NCBI GenBank assembly: GCA_907165135.1
Contig: OU015569.1
Span: forward strand, 2,480,001-2,544,000
Origin: Oikopleura dioica
Lineage: Eukaryota; Animalia; Chordata
DNA length: 64,000 nucleotides
Reading direction: 5' to 3'
Position 1 is the first letter of the stretch. Each line of letters opens with the position of its first letter. The position numbers and the translations under genes were made by a program. The notes under the pieces were generated by a model. That model made no database searches. It worked only from the letters and a program-made list of their open reading frames with translations, and was not told where the DNA came from. Shown here piece after piece: positions 206-21,500 of the stretch.

Positions 206-2130
206 ATGAGATGCTGGGAAAAGAAAAAGAATAAAAACGAATTCAGGAGTCGTCGAATTAAATCTTGGGTGCGGACAAAATGGGAAATGGTGCTGATATT
301 TTTGCTAATAGTCGTTGTGGTCCCCCAGATCCAGACGGTTTTCAAGCAACACCGCAAGCTACGGTTCAAAATGTCAATTTCTATATCCACTCGTTTTTCC
401 CCAAGCAAGAGCCCAAACTTGAACCGTGAAAAAAGAGAAACAAGCATAAACACAACTCTCCCACTGTCGAACCTTTGGTCCAAAAAACAAAAGTCGTTGT
501 CGTCGAACATGAGCGCGAAAAACAGCCTGATTACAGCCCAGATATAGTGAATGTAGTCGAGGAAGAAAAACACTGGGAAAAGGTCGATGAAAATATCAAG
601 AAAGAAAAAGATGATGATCTTAGCTCCGGATTTCACACTGTAAAATTTTTCTTGCAACATTGACATTTGTGAATCCAATCAAAGCCAAATTCTGGTGCCA
701 AGTTCAAATGTCCAAGAGGACTATCCGAGGCCAGAAGAACTGAGCGAAGAAGAGCACACAACGCAGCTTCCTCCGACTGAGAAACCTTTTATCCCAGAGG
801 CCGCAGAAGCTGGAACGGAAAAACAAGAGGAGCACGCTGCTGAGAAGACAAACATCCTTCGTGGCAGCGCTGATGTCTGGACACCAGAGACGGTTAAAAG
901 CGACGATGAACTGTTCGAAGCCGCCCTTGGAATGAACATGGGAGCACTGCCCAACCCCGATTTCGTCTATCACAACAAACTGCCTAAGTGCGGCTCGACA
1001 ACGATGCACGCAATCCTCGGCGTACTCAGTAGATGGAACAGCTTTCGATATTTGAAGCTAGAGCCCTCGTTGGTGAAATTCTTCGACGGCGAGAAAATGA
1101 GCAAGCTTATCAACACACTAGTGGAGAATAAAAAAGTCTCGAAGGAAAGCGGTGGTCCAGGGAATCTCCTATCTCTTTCGGGGTTATCTCGAAAATGCGA
1201 GAGTGTTGTAATGAAATTAGCATAGACCATCGAAAAGCCCTTTTTCATTTTCAAACATCATTACTACTTCAATGCGAGCATGTACGAGCTTGAGACGCCG
1301 ACCTGGATTAATGTCATTCGCGATCCGCTCAGGCGAGGTTTTGGACCAGCTTTACTATTGAGTTTTACTACTAGTAGCATCCAGTTAAAAAACCTTTCAA
1401 AAGCTGGTTCGAATCGAACTTTTACTTCAAACGCTTTGGCTGGGAAAGACAACCAGGAAGCCGGAGAAGAGAGGATCAAGATCTGACGATTGATAAATGC
1501 GTTGAAACGGGACATGAAGATTGCAAAAAAGTCAAGGTACTGCTTCTAGAAATCAGCGTTTCTCCTTGATTATTATTTGACCAAATATTCAACGTTCGTC
1601 TCAGTGGAAGTACAATCAATTCTTGTGCGGCAATGCCCCTGTATGTACAGGCCACTCGCCTGCTGAGAAACAGAAGGCGGCTGAAATCGCCAAGCACAAC
1701 ATCGCCAACAACTTTTTCCTCGTCGGCATTCTGGAGCAGTTTATTGACACCCTTCACGTCTTTGAGAAACTGATGCCGTCTTACTACAGCAGGTGAGGTG
1801 TTAACCTTTCTAATGTGGCCGAGTTAATACATAATCGTAAATCCGCCTTCAGAGCTGTCGAAGCTCTAAACTCACAAAGCGTGCAGCAGATTATCAATGC
1901 GACGAAAACGCAACACAAGACGCCCATGTCAGACGCGAGCAAAAACTACTTCAGGTGCAGTTTGTCTCGTTTCCATTGAAATTTCAGCTAAAAATAACGC
2001 TAGAAATGGACCGTTGAGGCACGAAATCGACGTCTACAACTTTGCAAAACGAATTTTCAACGAGAAAATGAAACGAGCAGGAATAGACCCTTATGTAAAG
2101 GTGAATCATTCTAAACGACTATATTTTTAA
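206..2130 (+). CDS. Golgi type II membrane sulfotransferase, heparan sulfate 2-O-/uronyl 2-O-sulfotransferase family (multi-exon)
   Basis: Basic N-tail plus TM (MVLIFLLIVVVVP), acidic stem, 5'-PSB motif HNKLPKCGSTT, then HHYYF and INVIRDPLSWFESNFYFKRFG (3'-PB, rebuilt across a GC-AG intron), QFLCG, FFLVGILEQF and EIDVYNFAKRIF; stop at 2130. Start codon uncertain. Confidence 0.9.
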
Positions 2131-2501
2131 ACTACTTATCCTAAGCCACCAAAAAACTGACCACGCTGCAGCCAAAAACGAATTCTTACTATGCCAATAA
2201 TATTTATTTGCACTTCTAATTCTTCATCATTATTATTATTATTTTAAAGTATTTAATATTACGAGTGTCCGATTTTCACTGAAACTTTGCCTGTTCATTG
2301 CTGGAGTAAACATGCTTTAATTATATTTCATTTTTAATTTTTAATTTCTATATTTTTTGACTTTAAGTTGTTGACAAAAATAGGGATTTTACATGTAGAG
2401 AGCCTTCATCGTCCGCCAAGGTCTAATTAAGGCACTTTTAATTATGAAATAAAGCTAAAGAGAGAGTCCTCAACAATCTCTTATTTAGAAGGGGTCGCCA
2501 A

Positions 2502-2689
2502 GCTGTGTCTGCAACCTGCGTCAAGGCCTGAGTCAGGGCCTGAGAAGTCTTAAATGAAAAGCCGCGTAGCGGCTTTTATGAAAACGAAGCCGCTAAAATA
2601 AAAACTAGATAAAAAATCGCTACGCGGCTTTTCATTCAAGACTTCTCAGGCCCTGACTCAGGCTTTGAACACAGGTTGCCAAGCCCAAC
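2502..2689. mobile_element. Foldback MITE family A, copy 1
   Basis: Long TIRs (GCAACCTGCG..CCTGAGTCAGGGCCTGAGAAGTCTT..AAAAGCCGCGTAGCG and its reverse complement); lies just 3' of the candidate peptide gene stop. Confidence 0.9.
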
Positions 2690-2699
2690 CCTTGAGACG

Positions 2700-3115
2700 T
2701 CAATATGCCTTTCCTTCGGTAAGCAGGGAGTAAAGCAACTCCACCTCGTCTTTCTTCTCCTGCTCGCGCTCCATAAACGTCAGCAGATTCGTAATGTACG
2801 AACTGAATAACAGTCATTAACAAAATAACCCTTTGATAGTTTTTTAATCGGCGTGTAAGATTGATTTGCGCGTGTTTTCGTTGGTACCTCCTTTTTTGCC
2901 GCGAGAGCTCTGATGATGACGAAAAGATGTCATTTGACTGGGTCAGGGATGAAAAATTAATTGAGCGGTACGAAATGGTCAATTTAGTAGATTTGATTTT
3001 TAGATGAACTTTATTTTTGGGTCTCTCGTTTTTGGGAGAAGGTCTCTAGATAAGCTTCATCCCTGTTCTGTGCGGCGGAGTTGAAGAGTGCCAAAATGAG
3101 CAAGAAGAATTGCAT
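2700..3115 (-). CDS. Candidate secreted peptide prohormone (signal peptide, KR/RQKR sites, GK amidation signal), 3 exons
   Basis: Exons about 3115-3026, 2937-2888 and 2802-2700 give MQFFLLILALFNSAAQNRDEAYLETFSQKR|SNDIFSSSSELSRQKRS|SYITNLLTFMEREQEKKDEVELLYSLLTEGKAY*. Intron 2 is canonical GT-AG and in phase; intron 1 needs a GA donor; the last exon has GC3-rich, coding-like codons. Confidence 0.6.
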
Positions 3116-3364
3116 CGTGCTGCTTATCTTATCTGGATATTTTCTTAAAATTGATAACGAGTTCTTTGTGTAACTGAGTTCTTGGCCAGGCGAGCTTATT
3201 TATAGCCTTTTGGTTAAAAATTAATACAAGCCCAGCTTCGCCGCTGATTATTCTTGCAGGAAGAAACAAATTGTTGCAGAGTACGCAATTGACAAGAGTC
3301 AGGGTTAACATCGCTTTTTAGAAGATACAAATTTCTCTCTCTATAAATATTTTGAACTTTTGAT

Positions 3365-3460
3365 GCTAGGCTCGACAACCTGTGAAAAAACCTGAGTCAG
3401 GGCCTGAAGAGTTCTTTCAGGCCCTGACTCAGGTTTTCTGCACCTGTTGCCGAGCTCAGC
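3365..3460. mobile_element. MITE family A, copy 2 (minimal, TIR-only hairpin)
   Basis: Almost pure inverted repeat; flanked by the direct repeat TTTGAT (3359-3364 and 3461-3466). Confidence 0.92.
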
Positions 3461-5355
3461 TTTGATCTTTGATATCTTCAGAAGAAATTCAAGGACAGAA
3501 AAATATAAGAAAAGGCCCAAAAGAAAGATCTTTCTCTTTGCAATTAATAATGACACGGGAAGGGGTCTTTTCCTCTCGGCTTGATGGAAAACGGTTTAGA
3601 CTACTCCACGAGAAGCAGCTCAGCTGTACATATAACGCCTGTATATCCAGTAATAATATTATTTTGCTCCTATAAAATCACCTTTCAATCAATGATGCGA
3701 CTTACGAGAGTAATCGCTATTGAATTCAAAATGGCGGAAATTTAGGATTTTGGATGGAAGTAACGGTGTTTCTCTGAGCTGAGATCGAGTTGGAAGAGTT
3801 TTTTTCTGGAGCTTTTTTGAAGATGTATTGAGTTAGAATCGATTCGAGGGAGACTGGTTTAATATAAATGATGGCATCTCAATAGTTCAGTGAAGAGGTT
3901 AATATTAAGAGAGGTACAGTGGCCTGGCGCGATTTGAGTCGTCACTGGGTATCCCATTTCAGTGGCCGTTCCAGACTCTTACGTTGGGCCACTTACCGCC
4001 CGGTGACGTCCTTTCTCCAAAATCTCAAATCAAACTCGCCTCTCTATTTATTGTCGCCGAATTCCAACATTTTCTCAACGGAAACAAAGACCCCCTTTCT
4101 CTTTTTAAAAAAACTACCAAATAAAAAGCTAAATTAAATTTGCAAAACTATCTTCACAATACAATAATTTCTGTTAATAATGAATAGTATCATGTGGATC
4201 ATCGTGCATGCGTTCCCCCGAGACAATCATTGAAAAGAATTAACTTAAACCCCCAAAAATATATTAATTTTTCTAGGCTGCCTTTTGTCAAGTTATTGAA
4301 AATAGCCCTACTTTGAGGGGATTTTCGACCGAATTTTTTTGGCAAAAATTTTTTCTAGTTTTCGACGCCTGATTTTTTCAACCCTTTTCTATCCACCAGT
4401 AGACTCAGATTTTCCCATCTACTCCGGTTTTCCCGCATTTTTGGTCACGGAAATCCCGATTCTGGTCGACCCCCCCCCTTAACTAGTCAAAATACCCCTA
4501 CTTCGATCACTTGAAGTCATTTATCGCGTTTTTTTTTTGTTTCTAAGAGCAAAAAAGGAATGACTACTTGATGAGAATCGAGTCTGTCTGTGTTTCGATT
4601 TCCGGCGTCTCTAAAGGGTCTCTAAAGATTGACAGATGATTAGTTCTTGGCAGGGCGTCTAGGTTTACAACAGAATCTACCTTCCCGTGTTCATGCTGCC
4701 AGATGTTGGAGATAAGCGAGAATAATTAGCGCCGCTAATTGGAAAATTTCTGCATTATCACGTGTTCCCGCGGTGGTGGAAAGTTTTTAGGAATCCGGTA
4801 CCAGCTCGAGCAAGTAGCGAAAAAAAGCTGCTTCCAGCTCTTCTCAGTCAAAGTTAACCCTTAAAGTTTTGAAAGAATTGGGGGCTGAAAGAATAGCATT
4901 TGAATATATACAACGTGAATCTTTTTCCGGTATGAGCAAATGTTTAAAATTAAGAGTCTTGTTATTGCTCTTAATTACGGTGGCAGAGCAGCGAGAGTAA
5001 CTCCAACTCAGGAGCAGTTCTGTTCTTTTTTCTCTCTGTTTTGTTCTGGTTTTTCAGACCGAGACGGTAAATCTGACTGCCGAGTGTCTGTCAACTTTGG
5101 TTTGATAAATCATCATCGCCAATTCAAAATTCAATAGCTTGAATATTCAAAATAAAGGAAGAGGGTTTTTACCCCACTTGTTACTTTTCTCCTGCAAGAA
5201 AAAAAAACTTCTTAGCGATGGAAAGAATGGGGGCATTATTGGATCAAATGATCTTGATCATCCACGTGTTAATCAGTCTTTTTGTGGATCCTGTCCATTT
5301 TGGAGCCTTCTTTCAGTTTATTTTCTTCCAAAGAAGAACCTGCCTATTCGTCGCC

Positions 5356-5470
5356 GCAGTGACTCGGTGGCCTGTGAAGAAAACCTGAGTCAGGGTCTGA
5401 AAGATCTCAAATGAAAGGCCTTTCATTCAGACACTGACTCAGGTTTTTTTCGCAGGTCGTCGAGCCTAGC
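5356..5470. mobile_element. MITE family A, copy 3
   Basis: AAAACCTGAGTCAGGGTCTGA...CTGACTCAGGTTTT..CAGGTCGTCGAGCCTAGC. Confidence 0.85.
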
Positions 5471-6691: not shown

Positions 6692-9600
6692 AATTCGAAT
6701 TTGAAGTTCATCATCGAGGCGGCGAAAATAAGATCTACACCTGGAGGGAGGCCAAAAACTATTGCCAATCGTAAGTCCAAGGGAAATCGCCATTTGGGCT
6801 CGGCAACCTGTGTAGAAACCTGAGTCAGGGTTCTGAAAAGAGCTTCAGTAAAAAGCCGCGTAGCTGTTATTTCATAAACGAAGACACAAAACAGCTTCTC
6901 TAGAATACAAAAATCGGTTAAAATGGTAACTTTGGCGAAGCCGCTTTGCGGCTTTATTTTTTTAAAAAGCCGCTACGCGGCTTTCGTTTTAAAATAACAA
7001 GCATTTTTTAAACTCTGGTTGTCAACCTCGAGTTCAAGGAGAATTACCATAAAAACACTTGAAAAAAAAGGATAGATATATGCAGATCGGAAAGATTAGA
7101 GATTACCGTTGCTCTGCATACAAATAACGCTCTTCTTATTCATCATTCAGGATATACGATGGTTGGCAATTGGTGATCGTGAACTCGCCCGTAAAGCAAG
7201 AAGCACTTGAGAAGGCCTTTCTCAAAGCCGGGGCACAGGACGAAGATGCGCTCTGGATCGGTTTCATGAACGAAGACGGCTGGGGAGCCAACTCGGCCGA
7301 TCCCGCGTTGACCACCGATCTGTACGGAAACCGCGCGGTTTACACCAACTATGGCCCAGGAGAGCCAAACAACAAACGTGGCAGCCCGAAAGATGAAAGA
7401 GGCGAAAACTGCGTCCGAATGGTTTTCTTTCAATTACTTGAATATCAGTCAATTTAAAATATTATTTTCAGCGATACAAGAAGAAAAAGTTCTTCTGGGA
7501 AGATGCTCTTTGCGGTCGAGGAGATACCATCAAATCGGGAAAGAACAAGAAAGCTTACAAAAACTCCTTTGCGTGTGAACCAAGGAACGTTGAAAAAAAG
7601 ATAAAATGAAGATAAATTGCAAATTTTTGGAAAATTAAGATTCAAGCAAACGGACTTTTTTTCAACTTGAAAGACCTCTGATGGATCTTGGTCCTTGTGA
7701 CAAACTGCCAGAAGAAGAAATCCCACAAGACGACAATTACCGCATTTTTCCAGCGGAAAAGCTTGGCTACAACGAAGCAAGAGCGAAGTGCCAAGCGCTT
7801 GACGAAGAAGAAACCGACAATTCGGGCAAGTGGGATCTCGTCGTTTTCGAGCAAGAAGAAGAACTGCAGTACGTGAAGATGTTGATCAACTGCCTTCCAG
7901 AGTCGTTTTGGGTGGGGTACCGCGAGAAAGACGGACTAGCGCTGGATGCGTTTGGCCGAAAGCCTCAAATCGAAATTCCTTGGTGGGTCAACAAGCCTTC
8001 CGGGGACCTCGACGACCCGAATAATCCTGGAGAGAACTGTGTCAGGATGCAAAACGGAAAGTTCACGGATGAAGAATGCACCAACGCCAACACTGGCCAG
8101 ATGAGAGAAGGGCTAGGCGTTGGCTTTGTCTGCGAACGGCACACGCACATTATTTACGACGTAAGTTTCGACTGGGCTCGGGAACCTGTGTAGAAGACCT
8201 GAGTCACGGTCCTGAGAAGGAGCTGTAATTTATAGCCTATAAAGAAAATAGCAGCGTAGCGGCTTTTTAACGAAGCCGCCAAGTAACTTCGCCAATAGTA
8301 CCCTTTCAATCAATATTTTAAATTTTCAGTCAGACCCTGACTCAGGTTTCTACTCAGATTCCATAAATTATCTTCTCAATCTATTTCTAAAACTCTGGCG
8401 AAGCCGACTTCGTTTTCAAAAAAGCCGCTACGCGGCTTTTCATTCAAGCCCTTTCAGGACTCTGACTCAGGTTTTCTACGCAGGTCGCGGAACGCGCAAG
8501 TTCGAGCAAAAGTTTAGATGGAAATAATGCAGTTCTAAACTCGTAGTAAATTAGAACCACCTTAAGTTGCTCTTATCACAACGTTCTTGAGCATAATCCC
8601 TTACGCGAAATTTTTGATATACGCGGCTTTGGACAGCTTTTTTCTCTCTTTTTCCTAAATCGGTGGACCGTTAATCCGTCAACGTGAAAATAGATATTCA
8701 TCGAAATAAATCGCGTGATTAAGGAGGAGCCGGCCAAAACATGCGAAACCAACGAGCATGGAATTCTGCCGTTTCGAGTGCAAAAGGGTTGTCCCACCCC
8801 GAGCTACTGCACAGCTACGTCGGAGATCGTCGACGCCTGGTCCGTCCAGAAAAGAGGAAAGGGAACTTCGTTCGGCCTGGCGCTGAAGGTTTCCATTCCA
8901 AACCGGTTCAGGAACAGTTTCGAAAGCATTTCGCAATCAGAAATCAGCCGGCTTGTTTTCGAGAACGAGGCCCGTTCCAGCTCATTTGATAAATAACTAT
9001 CTATACCGAATAAATTGTGAGAAACTGGCATGAGATGGGAAAACAAAGCAGTCGGGTATTCGATACTTATCCGCTTCCCACAAGACATCATCTCGGCTAA
9101 TTTTCAAGGGATGGGATTCTTCTTTTCATTTACGTGAAATCGTTTTCGTTGACTCTCACAGTGAAGAATGACGATATTTCTCATGGTCGTTGACTTTCTC
9201 ATTGTGAGACCAAGCCTCTTCTACCAACCCTAACCCTAACCCCTCTTATTTCAGAGGAATTGATAGAATTAACAATTTTCAATTGAAATCCCAAAAAAGT
9301 TTTTAATTTCAATTTTTTCAATTTTTACAAAAGCGGTTCGGAAGTGCTTTTGCACTCAAAGTTTTACACAAACCCAAGCAACGACGGGTTTGATTTAGAT
9401 AAGAACTCGTTTCTCTTGCTTGTGGAGGGATTGCCCCGACGAGTCCATCCAACTGCGCTGGCTTTCAAAGGAAGAGTCAAAAGACATGAGTGCTTTGATC
9501 CGTCGATGCATGCTAGATCTGGATGTAAGTTCCACCGTGTGCTCGATGACCTGTGTAGAAAGCCTGAGGTTCTGAAAAGCTTAAATTAAAAGACGCGTAG

Positions 9601-11597: not shown

Positions 11598-11717
11598 CGT
11601 GGGCTCGGCAACACGTGTAGAAAACCTGAGTCAGGTTCTGAAGAGAGGTTCGCAAAGCGGCTTGGCAGGCTCTTCAGAGCCTGACTCAGGTTTTCTACAC
11701 AGGTTGCCGAACCCAGT
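11598..11717. mobile_element. MITE family A, short copy
   Basis: Both TIRs are near consensus; flanks AACGCT and CACGGT match at 4 of 6 positions. Confidence 0.9.
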
Positions 11718-18578: not shown

Positions 18579-21500
18579 ATGAACGCGACAGGATTCAGAA
18601 GAAAACCTTCACAAAGTGGTGTAACCAGCACTTGAAAAAGGTAATCAGCCTTGAGAAGGAGCCAGACGAAGCTTCCAAGTCAGCGGAAGGGTTGAAAGTA
18701 GACAAGCGGAACACTTTGTCACTAACAAGTATTAATGACTCGCTCGAAAATGGACACGAAAAGAATCACGATAATAATAATAATGATGATTTGGTAACTA
18801 ACAAAACTTGTAAATGTACACTTTTGGTGAGCAGCAATTTGAGCCCTTTTTCCGGATAAAATCGAAAATCAGGCTTTTTATCTTTTTATTCAAAGGGTGA
18901 CACTTCCGGTGAAACTAATTAAGAAACTTTATCAATTATCTAACTGCTGATTCTTAGTCTGGATCGACTATCGACGATTTGTATGAAGATCTCCGCGATG
19001 GCTTCAAGTTGCTCTCGTTGCTCCAGAACTTGAGTGGCCAGTCATTAGTAAGTCGGCATGACAGAAAGGTATGGGAAACGGAGAATGAAACTGGTGTCAC
19101 TGGTGTTTTTTCGCGAATCAGCACACGCCGCCTGATAATCGCTATCAAGTGGCGGAGCATAATTTCGATTTCTTCAATCACTTTCAATTTTGGAACTTCC
19201 AATCAGAAGCTAAATAGCAGTCGTTCTTAATTTTTATCTCGTTGAATATTCAGGGTTGAGTATTCGGTCACTTATGATCTCGGAATTCGCCGCTTGTTAG
19301 ATTTTGCGAAACATGCATTTTGCTCTGTGATCTGGAATTTTAACTAGAAATTTTCTCCTTTCTTATACCGTGATATTTTAATCCCCCCGTGAAGAGTATG
19401 ATCTAACACTCGAATAGAACCGCGCAAGCGCCACCCAAGGCCCAAGAATGTTCATGGTATGTCCCAATTTGTCTAAAATCGCCCACAACCTAACCATATA
19501 TTAATACTGGCTTCTTTCAAAACTAGCAGCTTTATTTGCATATCTCAAAAGCTTTCATGATTTGTTTGTTTCTTGTAGTGCACTTTGTTGTTACTAGAAC
19601 GTTTGTGGTGACATGTATCTTTACTGTAGCAAGACTTCTTTACTGATCTAATGGAAATATTATTTCAGGCGAGAGAAAAGGGAAGAAACAGAATACACCG
19701 GGTTCAAAATGTGCAGTTCGCGCTGGATTTTCTCAAGAAAAGAAAGGTAATTCCTGATGGTTTGCAACCTGTGTAGAAAACCTTAGTCAGGGTCTGAAAG
19801 ATCACTGAAGATTTGAATATCAATAGGAAGGGTAATTTTGCGAAGCCTTTTCGCGGCTTTTCATAAGTGATATTTCAAACCCTGACTCAGGTTTTCTAAA
19901 CAGGTTTAGAACCGAGCTTAAAATCCCTGTTGTCAACCAACCCTTACCCTGACTGTACTTAGGTCCGTCTTGTTAACATCCGAGCAGAGGACATCGTCGA
20001 TGGCAATCCAAAACTCATCCTTGGGCTTGTTTGGTCTATCATTCTGCACTTCCAGGTAACTTGGGTGGCCACAATAAGTCATGTTAAAATCGCTCAAAGT
20101 TGTCACACCGTGGGTTTGGTACAAAAGGCATCTCACTCGACAGCGCCACCTGAAATATTTTTGCGTGCCTAATTGCTCGTGGGCAGGGCAGAGGCTGATA
20201 AGCATGGAGCTAACGTAGTGCTAAACTCTGTTAGACAGCGGCCCTTTTTGCAGCAGCGCCCGCAGTCAGTAATTGTTGGATTTTGGGATTACTGACTGAC
20301 AAATACCGATGGGCGGATGCTGCTCAAAGCTCCGCGAGGGGGACTATTTCGAGCAAGTCCTGTATGTTGAGAGAGACGAGAGAGAGCGCGAGCAGAAACA
20401 TGGATTTCAATCTTTTCAAATATTAAAATTATTTATTTTTTTTTATATTTTATGCATTTTTTCCTTTTCCATTTTTATCCATGAAAAGCAATCAAACGGC
20501 ACACGCCGATTGAGCTGGCCACAGGGACTTTTAATCGACCCTTATGCCGAGGCGCATGACAGCGAGATCTCCTCAAAATCGTCGACAGCGCGAAAACGAG
20601 TGACATTTAGTGAATTGCCTAATGAGACATACGCGTGGGGACATGAACGCATAAGTTTGCGCTCATACGATGAGTTTCCGCCGCCGGTTCTTTTTGGTTA
20701 TAAAAGCGCAAATGCTAATTTTGTTTATAGGTTGAAGAGATTGTCATTGAAGGCGACGACTCGCAGCAACGGCTGACAGCGAAGAAAGCGCTGCTCCAAT
20801 GGGCGCGACAGAACATGGAAGGCTACGACACCAATGTCAACAATTTCACCACCGATTGGAGCGATGGCATGGCCTTCAATGTCATCATGCACAGAAACAA
20901 GTAAGCAACCAACGAGAATACGCATCGCTAACGATATTTTAAGGCCGGAGATCATTGATCTCACGAAAGTCTCGCAGATGTCAAACAGAGAGCGACTGGC
21001 AAACGCCTTCGATACTGCCGAGAAGAAGTTCGGAATCACTCCCTTGCTCGACCCAGAAGACGTCGATGTCGCCAAGCCAGACGAGAAGTCCATCATTACA
21101 TACGTCTCCTCCCTCTACGACGTCTTCCCCAAGGTAAGCTTGGGTTATCATTTTTGGTCTGAGAAATGCCCTGGTACCGTGTGAAATTATTTTTTAAAAA
21201 ACAATGGCGGGAAACCCTGCTTGTCGGTTTGAAACTTTGAAACACAAAAATGCAAAATTTTTTGTAGAAAAATGAGGTAAGCAGCTGACGACAATGTAAC
21301 ACAGTAACAATTTATTCTTAGCACATTATAAATTTCGTTAGTATCTCACTACGTAGGCTTTACACTTACTCAAACTCACTCTCATTAAGTCGAAGTAGCA
21401 CTTTACTCAGAGTTTAAAATAATCATGGGTTATTTTTACTGAAAATGATTATTTTGGGCACTGACGTTTTCCACAATGACATCACCGCACATCTTGTTAG

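Follow-up and report, generated by a model that had tools for sequence, protein, structure and literature searches.

A conserved three-exon gene of Oikopleura dioica encodes a predicted secreted precursor of a putatively amidated helical peptide

The window analyzed here is a whole stretch of 64,000 nucleotides (nt) from the larvacean Oikopleura dioica (assembly GCA_907165135.1, contig OU015569.1, positions 2,480,001 to 2,544,000), in which position 1 is the first letter. On its minus strand, the three-exon locus at 2700–3115 is a real gene, encoding a predicted secreted precursor of 66 residues. The precursor begins with 16 residues up to an invariant Gln, followed by a pro-region of 10–12 residues, an RQKR site, a 30-residue peptide, the residues G-K-A, and a free tail. 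In the orthologous lineages, it is 74–82 residues long, and the three coding exons are present in all lineages. The exons have a GC content of 44–48%, and the two introns 34–35%. The gene is a single copy in its genome, where searches with exon 1 and exon 3 found no paralogue, and it apparently lacks an annotation, as far as database and literature searches show. The features of the locus are collected in Table 1.

Table 1. Features of the peptide gene and its flanks in window coordinates. X4 is one of the RNA runs described in the text.
Feature	Position	Strand	Evidence or remark
Upstream block, ACAATTTGTTTCTTCC-type	3259..3275	-	About 60 nt upstream of the TATA box; near-identical in all lineages, flanks diverged
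TATA box TATAAATA	3197..3204	-	82 nt upstream of the ATG; GCTATAAAT invariant in all five lineage sequences
Putative 5′ untranslated region (5′UTR), upstream end uncertain	3116..3172	-	X4 RNA reads over 3135-3116, continuing upstream as the lineage-B contig
Tandem GATA-type motif AGATAAGATAAGC	3134-3122	-	In the putative 5′UTR; invariant in all lineages
Exon 1 coding part, 16 codons, signal peptide to conserved Gln MQFFLLILALFNSAAQ	3068..3115	-	ATG at 3115; 7 X4 reads at 3083-3135; end from the lineage-B RNA junction; conserved in all lineages
Intron 1, 130 nt, AA..AG	2938..3067	-	Equivalent 131-nt intron spliced out in lineage-B RNA
Conserved block GCTTATCTA inside intron 1	3055-3047	-	Kept across lineages
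Possible alternative GA donor in intron 1	3061-3060	-	G[T/C/A] 6 nt downstream of the RNA junction in every lineage, phase 0
Exon 2, 50 nt: Ser-rich pro-region SNDIFSSSSELS, RQKR (2901-2890), two bases of a split Ser codon	2888..2937	-	Translation; acceptor is a pyrimidine tract, then CAG
Intron 2, 85 nt, GT..AG	2803..2887	-	Donor GGAG/GTA and acceptor (T/C)AG kept in all lineages; GC 0.35
Exon 3: 30-residue peptide, then G-K-A-Y and stop	2700..2802	-	Translation
Predicted mature peptide, 30 residues, SSYITNLLT...LLYSLLTE	2715..2802	-	First Ser codon split between 2889-2888 and 2802
Gly-Lys, predicted amidation donor and basic residue	2709..2714	-	GGAAAGGCA (G-K-A) identical in all lineages
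C-terminal Ala-Tyr and TGA stop	2700..2708	-	Other lineages: unrelated tails of 11 or 19 residues
Putative 3′UTR, end uncertain, ATTAAA near 2441-2436	2430..2699	-	Read from sequence; palindromic insertion resembling a miniature inverted-repeat transposable element (MITE) at 2662-2515
MITE-like copies in the window	2515-2662, 3391-3433, 5384-5443, 8330-8346, 11625-11690, 19781-19891		CCTGAGTCAGGGCCTGA core

The exon-3 peptide (2703–2801, minus strand) was scored against 1.84 billion representative proteins, which gave three matches. One of them is P0003, a 35-residue environmental open reading frame (ORF) with 91% identity over 23 residues. P0003 sits on L003, a 1,160-nt Tara Oceans metagenome scaffold, and this scaffold is the entire orthologous locus. 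Its far end reaches the 3′ end of the same convergent neighbor gene as in the window, so synteny is kept. Further contigs came from a cluster look-up, two word-index protein searches and one metagenome scan, the last of which added one lineage-B contig and no more distant species. Altogether, eight distinct environmental contigs, the scaffold and seven more, contain the orthologous locus, either entire or as its 3′ part. We distinguish three lineages: the window, lineage A (L003, L004, which is the same as L015, L009 and L010) and lineage B (L005–L008 and L014). The exons were searched singly and joined only for translation and for estimating nonsynonymous (dN) and synonymous (dS) substitution. 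In a collection of 5.8 billion proteins, exon-3 queries of 43 and 51 residues (candidates of 24–89 residues) retrieved ORF fragments of environmental contigs and no spliced full-length protein of the gene. We notice that the gene calls P0005 and P0006 (contigs L005–L010) read TGA as Trp, and the stored proteins overrun the true stop of the tail.

Comparing the window with the other lineages revealed that the coding parts are 81–83% identical and the introns 42–56%, the latter being the level of a random alignment; the interior of intron 2 is unalignable. The TATA box, the upstream block, the last 20 nt of the 5′UTR, the ATG, the signal peptide, the intron-1 acceptor and both splice sites of intron 2 are all conserved. 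RQKR is invariant in the window and in every orthologous locus reaching exon 2, and the pro-region is kept save for a two-codon indel. In each of lineages A and B, 27 of the 30 peptide residues are identical to those of the window. The variable positions are 10, 16, 18 and 19 only, all located in the charged middle of the peptide, and both ends are invariant. Directly after G-K-A, sequence and length diverge, giving tails of 1 to 19 residues. Removal of the tail and use of the Gly for amidation would be expected to leave just such a limit of constraint at the Gly-Lys.

Purifying selection on the peptide is strong, and three deeply diverged lineages keep the gene structure. For the peptide with G-K-A, the window differs from the others by a dS of 0.49–0.86 and a dN of 0.05–0.07 (Nei-Gojobori). 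The dN/dS ratio of the peptide is 0.08–0.14 in these comparisons and 0.06–0.14 when lineage A versus B is included. Between the window and the others, the ratio is 0.24–0.31 for the signal peptide with the pro-region and 0.16–0.23 for the whole coding sequence. The synonymous excess is significant both for the peptide (Fisher p = 8e-6) and for the whole coding sequence (p = 8e-7). These values bear on the idea that the locus is no gene, being a chance chain of short intergenic frames or a conserved non-coding element. Such an idea might appeal to the facts that every exon lies under the usual ORF cut-offs, that the donor of intron 1 is non-canonical, and that no annotated protein was found. 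Yet frame, splice sites and amino acids are kept at a dS of 0.5–0.9 with mostly synonymous substitutions, and spliced RNA exists, so that the idea is effectively refuted and its probability close to nil.

Among the indexed sequencing runs, RNA or other, none was found to contain the stretch. Four RNA runs under the same species label were aligned to positions 700–3500 of the window, and 67 reads were placed. Most of them (65/67) are 90–95% alike to the window and the other two 95–99%, so these runs must derive from a diverged lineage and can match only conserved parts. Seven reads of run X4 cover the end of the 5′UTR and the first 11 codons, and the other three runs have no reads on this interval (3083–3135). 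Over exons 2 and 3, no reads at ≥90% likeness were found in the four runs, which is uninformative on expression. The X4 reads join the CAG of codon 16 straight to the TCA opening exon 2, equivalent to a splice from 3068 to 2937 of the window. Their downstream overhang departs from the continuing genomic sequence of the window. It matches L005 with 131 nt of genomic sequence spliced out: 15 nt from the end of exon 1, then 15 nt from the start of exon 2. Meanwhile, the upstream overhang, together with four base differences from the window, is an exact match to L005 and L014. The gene is transcribed and its first junction is spliced in lineage B.

This junction defines the end of exon 1. The ORF of exon 1 contains no GT, so a preliminary description of the locus, made from the window alone, needed a GA donor at 3026, which it joined to 2937. 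Lineage-B RNA joins the equivalent of 3068 to 2937 instead. Since codon 16 is spliced to exon 2, the former tail of exon 1 (3067–3026), with its QKR site and GA donor, is intronic. The codons NRDEAYLETFSQKR past codon 16, QKR included, are not conserved as protein, and an in-frame stop follows 8 codons on in L004 and L009. An exon end at 3026 is hence ruled out by the lack of conservation, by the stops in two lineages and by an RNA splice 42 nt upstream. The preliminary three-exon model stands in its ATG at 3115, exon 2, intron 2 and exon 3, and falls for the part of exon 1 at 3067–3026; the QKR site and the first peptide that it released are absent from the conserved transcript. The translation of exons 2 and 3, with RQKR, the 30-residue peptide and a GK near the stop, is as first described. 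The proposed layout of signal peptide, basic site and Gly-Lys is backed by conservation across lineages and by the end of constraint after G-K-A, and the expected conservation of peptide and G-K is found in two further lineages.

The first junction has CAG on both sides, and the cut could shift by up to 3 nt leftward with the same mRNA. A possible alternative donor, the G[T/C/A] lying 6 nt farther on, would add two residues. GA-AG introns are frequent in O. dioica (PMC7072748), and about 11% of the introns of the Okinawan assembly OKI2018_I69 are non-canonical (PMC8008620). We notice that AGATAAGATAAGC, with two overlapping GATA-type sites, is the reverse complement of the invariant GCTTATCT block located 13 nt into intron 1. 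This complementary pair could represent DNA sites of a GATA factor or a stem in the pre-mRNA that loops out exon 1 together with the odd donor, and it has no covariation to choose between the two. Farther upstream, the block at about 60 nt from the TATA box is a putative transcription-factor site, judging from its conservation between diverged flanks.

The N-terminal segment has the features of a signal peptide in part. Its hydrophobic core spans 9 residues, and small residues occupy −3/−1 before Gln16 in all lineages (S-A-A/Q in the window, S-T-G/Q in the other lineages). By rule of thumb, such residues fit a signal-peptidase cleavage before Gln16, the predicted site. The short core and an n-region lacking positive charge could also be taken for a membrane anchor, so that the product would be a small membrane-tethered protein. 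However, a stretch of nine hydrophobic residues is too short to cross a membrane, the small −3/−1 residues are kept in all lineages despite substitutions, and the invariant RQKR would release the peptide from any anchor. We regard such a tethered product as very improbable.

In the pro-region, the Ser-x-Glu of S-S-E-L (2910–2916, minus strand) is kept in all lineages. Ser-x-Glu is the consensus of secretory-pathway kinases of the Fam20C type, and this residue is a possible phosphorylation site.

The exon-3 piece is predicted by AlphaFold2, on an alignment of five sequences, as one helix over residues 2–29 with a mean predicted local distance difference test (pLDDT) score of 90, ending before the G-K. 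The net charge of the peptide is −4 to −5. The same genome contains proprotein-convertase P domains at at least six places, copper monooxygenase domains of the PHM/DBH type, and receptor genes with HRM and 7tm_2 domains.

On the basis of these features, we consider it probable that the gene is the precursor of a secreted peptide signal, a hormone or a neuropeptide, processed via RQKR and Gly-Lys to an amidated helical peptide. Secretion, cutting at RQKR, cleavage at the Lys, amidation and a signaling role are all inferred. In the proposed pathway, the 15-residue signal peptide would be removed in the endoplasmic reticulum, leaving an N-terminal Gln, and a convertase of the furin/PC type would cut after RQKR to free the C-terminal piece. 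This piece would then be cleaved at the invariant Lys and trimmed by a carboxypeptidase, and an enzyme of the PHM/PAM type would oxidize the Gly. The product would be a 30-residue, C-terminally amidated peptide folded as a single α-helix, and once secreted it may act on a receptor. One candidate is a divergent class B1 G-protein-coupled receptor (GPCR) on the same contig (G000:C2, about 10.81 Mb).

Several points weigh against this interpretation. The Lys after the Gly is monobasic, with no basic residue at −4, −6 or −8, and its cleavage would be non-canonical. The n-region of the signal peptide, as noted, is uncharged. Over its whole length, the helix has a hydrophobic moment no greater than that of shuffled sequences; its two ends, taken singly, are moderately amphipathic. 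Intron 1 has an unusual donor, either AA or an ambiguous CAG/CAG junction, and a reverse-transcription artefact at the 3-nt repeat might conceivably underlie the first junction. The RNA comes from a sister lineage only, and it shows exon 1 and the first junction in a few reads of one run among four; expression and splicing in the genome of the window are inferred from conservation. In addition, the orthologues were found within the O. dioica species complex only.

Some of these points would suit a peptide that is secreted and cut by a convertase without being an amidated hormone, such as a form retaining G-K-A or a component or regulator of the mucous house, or a product of gametes or pheromone signaling, or of defense. 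A signal peptide and RQKR show passage through the secretory pathway only, and a single Lys is weak as a cleavage signal. The Ala following G-K is invariant too, and finding reads in only one RNA sample out of four would suit a product limited to one stage or sex. Opposed to this are the end of constraint exactly at G-K-A, with tails of 1 to 19 residues beyond it, a charge that speaks against a cationic antimicrobial peptide, and a size far too small and a sequence non-repetitive for a structural protein. We hold such a product to be unlikely and keep the amidated peptide signal as the preferred reading.

The kinship of the peptide was examined with profiles. Pfam profiles CRF, ELH and Hormone_2 gave no match to the exon pieces at E ≤ 10. 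In six-frame scans of the whole genome at the same threshold, CRF and ELH matched neither the locus nor any other place; the CRF profile is short and the HMMER filters drop weak matches, so that a very remote kinship could escape. The Hormone_2 scan gave no match at the locus and four sub-threshold matches elsewhere. The best of the four, at G000:C5:6012372-6012410 (L016 773–811, plus strand), reaches 19.5 bits versus a cut-off of 21.2 (E 0.1), has no start-codon ORF in frame, and is probably due to chance. A profile of the five orthologues was compared with all solved chains, which include CRF, urocortins, PTH, the glucagon family and other receptor-bound peptides, and it retrieved only calmodulin, centrin and gp41 at E > 1. 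Look-alikes in the ESM Atlas scored 0.84 to bacterial clusters and are uninformative.

By these searches, the peptide has no detectable kinship with CRH, DH44 or ELH, and the precursor is classed by sequence as orphan and lineage-restricted. The preliminary description had placed it in the CRH/DH44/ELH superfamily. This placement finds no CRF or ELH profile match, and peptide length, exon structure and the position of Asn are unlike the CRH family. The alignments to ELH and CRH that had been drawn by eye amount to about 6 of 27 identities between Leu/Glu-rich helices, indistinguishable from chance. Likewise, the middle peptide once thought to recall secretin is only the short pro-region upstream of RQKR and would not be the ligand.

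A derived CRH/DH44/ELH member acting on a CRH-type class B1 receptor would nevertheless share the architecture of a C-terminal peptide with an RxKR cut, a Gly-Lys near the stop and a predicted helix. Peptide families this small often escape sequence searches, and the genome contains at least one class B1 receptor, with CRF receptors among its solved-structure matches, though not the best. In opposition to this are the genome-wide absence of CRF and ELH matches at E ≤ 10, solved-chain matches that all have E > 1, a length of 30 versus 38–47 residues, the lack of Asn in the C-terminal half, and three coding exons versus one. We consider membership in that family quite improbable.

The receptor gene lies within L011 (G000:C2:10805500-10813500), on the minus strand at about 3300–5370 of that region. 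The hormone-binding domain is spread across three exons, and the exons for transmembrane (TM) segments TM3–TM7 are typical. The transmembrane exons match receptors of secretin, glucagon, GHRH, VIP/PACAP, PTH2 and CRF at E 1e-5 to 1e-7, in which secretin and glucagon are best and CRF is lower. By sequence, the receptor appears too divergent to subtype. Further HRM matches locate at C5:1.698 Mb and C1:1.158-1.160 Mb. We speculate, as an unlikely idea, that the peptide might be the endogenous ligand of this divergent larvacean class B1 receptor and a member of the CRH/secretin superfamily too derived for recognition by sequence. In this arrangement, the invariant N-terminal nine residues would act as the activation end, and the invariant amidated C-terminal helix would bind the extracellular domain. 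If true, appendicularians would gain their first defined peptide-receptor pair.

The surroundings of the gene contain a palindromic MITE-like family around CCTGAGTCAGGGCCTGA, with 12 core matches in the window versus 0 expected by chance. Copies lie in the putative 3′UTR and about 190 nt upstream of the TATA box, and both are missing from the orthologous loci, where the distance from the stop to AATAAA is about 95 nt, without the palindrome. The convergent neighbor gene (695–2100, plus strand) has a sulfotransferase-like motif, NKLPKCGSTT, a likeness seen by eye. It is expressed in the sister-lineage runs X4 and X5, with a read joint that skips 1529–1849, and about 600 nt separate its 3′ end from the peptide gene's stop.

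Oikopleura is a main model for chordate evolution and genome compaction, yet our literature searches found no paper that deals chiefly with larvacean neuropeptides or peptide hormones, which leaves a gap in this field. The gene described here yields a defined predicted product, a 30-residue amidated helix, which could be screened against the small set of class B1 and other orphan GPCRs in this 64-Mb genome. It also illustrates that annotation misses genes with a non-GT donor whose exons all fall below ORF cut-offs, even when the assembly is chromosome-scale, and that environmental metagenome contigs of sister lineages can validate them. Meanwhile, the resemblance to a hormone family seen by eye failed testing, which calls for caution.

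We further compared the gene with known peptide systems. Like the precursors of CRH, urocortin, sauvagine and DH44 (PF00473), it has a C-terminal helical acidic peptide, a site of the RxKR/RxRR type, a Gly-Lys near the stop, and a C-terminal amide, which is predicted here. The receptors of CRH-type ligands are class B1 GPCRs, of which this genome has at least one. The ending is partly alike: two residues separate G-K from the stop in the window, and tails of 11 or 19 residues do so in other lineages. Unlike that family, the peptide has 30 residues versus 38–47, and the precursor 66–82 versus about 160–200. The family-wide motifs of CRF are an N-terminal Leu/Ser and a C-terminal Asn (PMC7481443), whereas the only Asn here is at position 6 and none is in the C-terminal half. 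The prepro-peptide of the CRH family is on one exon in gnathostomes, lampreys and Ciona (PMC7406891), in contrast to three coding exons here, which is weak evidence given the high intron turnover of O. dioica. In layout, then, the gene works like a precursor of the CRH type, yet it does not qualify for membership of that family.

The ELH of Aplysia and Lymnaea (PF02323) is, like the peptide predicted here, amidated, helical and rich in Leu, Glu and Arg, with about 36 residues and a Leu-Leu near the C-terminus. It is, however, released from a large polyprotein of many peptides, whereas here a single peptide follows one RQKR, and there is no profile match. ELH is not known outside molluscs and other lophotrochozoans. 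The secretin, glucagon, VIP and PACAP peptides (PF00123) are also helical, as class B1 ligands of 27–44 residues, but the peptide here lacks their His/Tyr-Ser/Ala-Asp/Glu-Gly-Thr-Phe start and shows no profile match at the locus.

A further comparison is with the Ciona-specific neuropeptides, whose receptors were found by machine learning (PMC6475428). They differ from our case in that the present gene is found in the O. dioica complex only and is known from sequence and RNA reads. Both are small precursors lacking homologues beyond a narrow set of tunicates, and their recognition depends on a signal peptide, basic sites and a Gly amidation signal alone.

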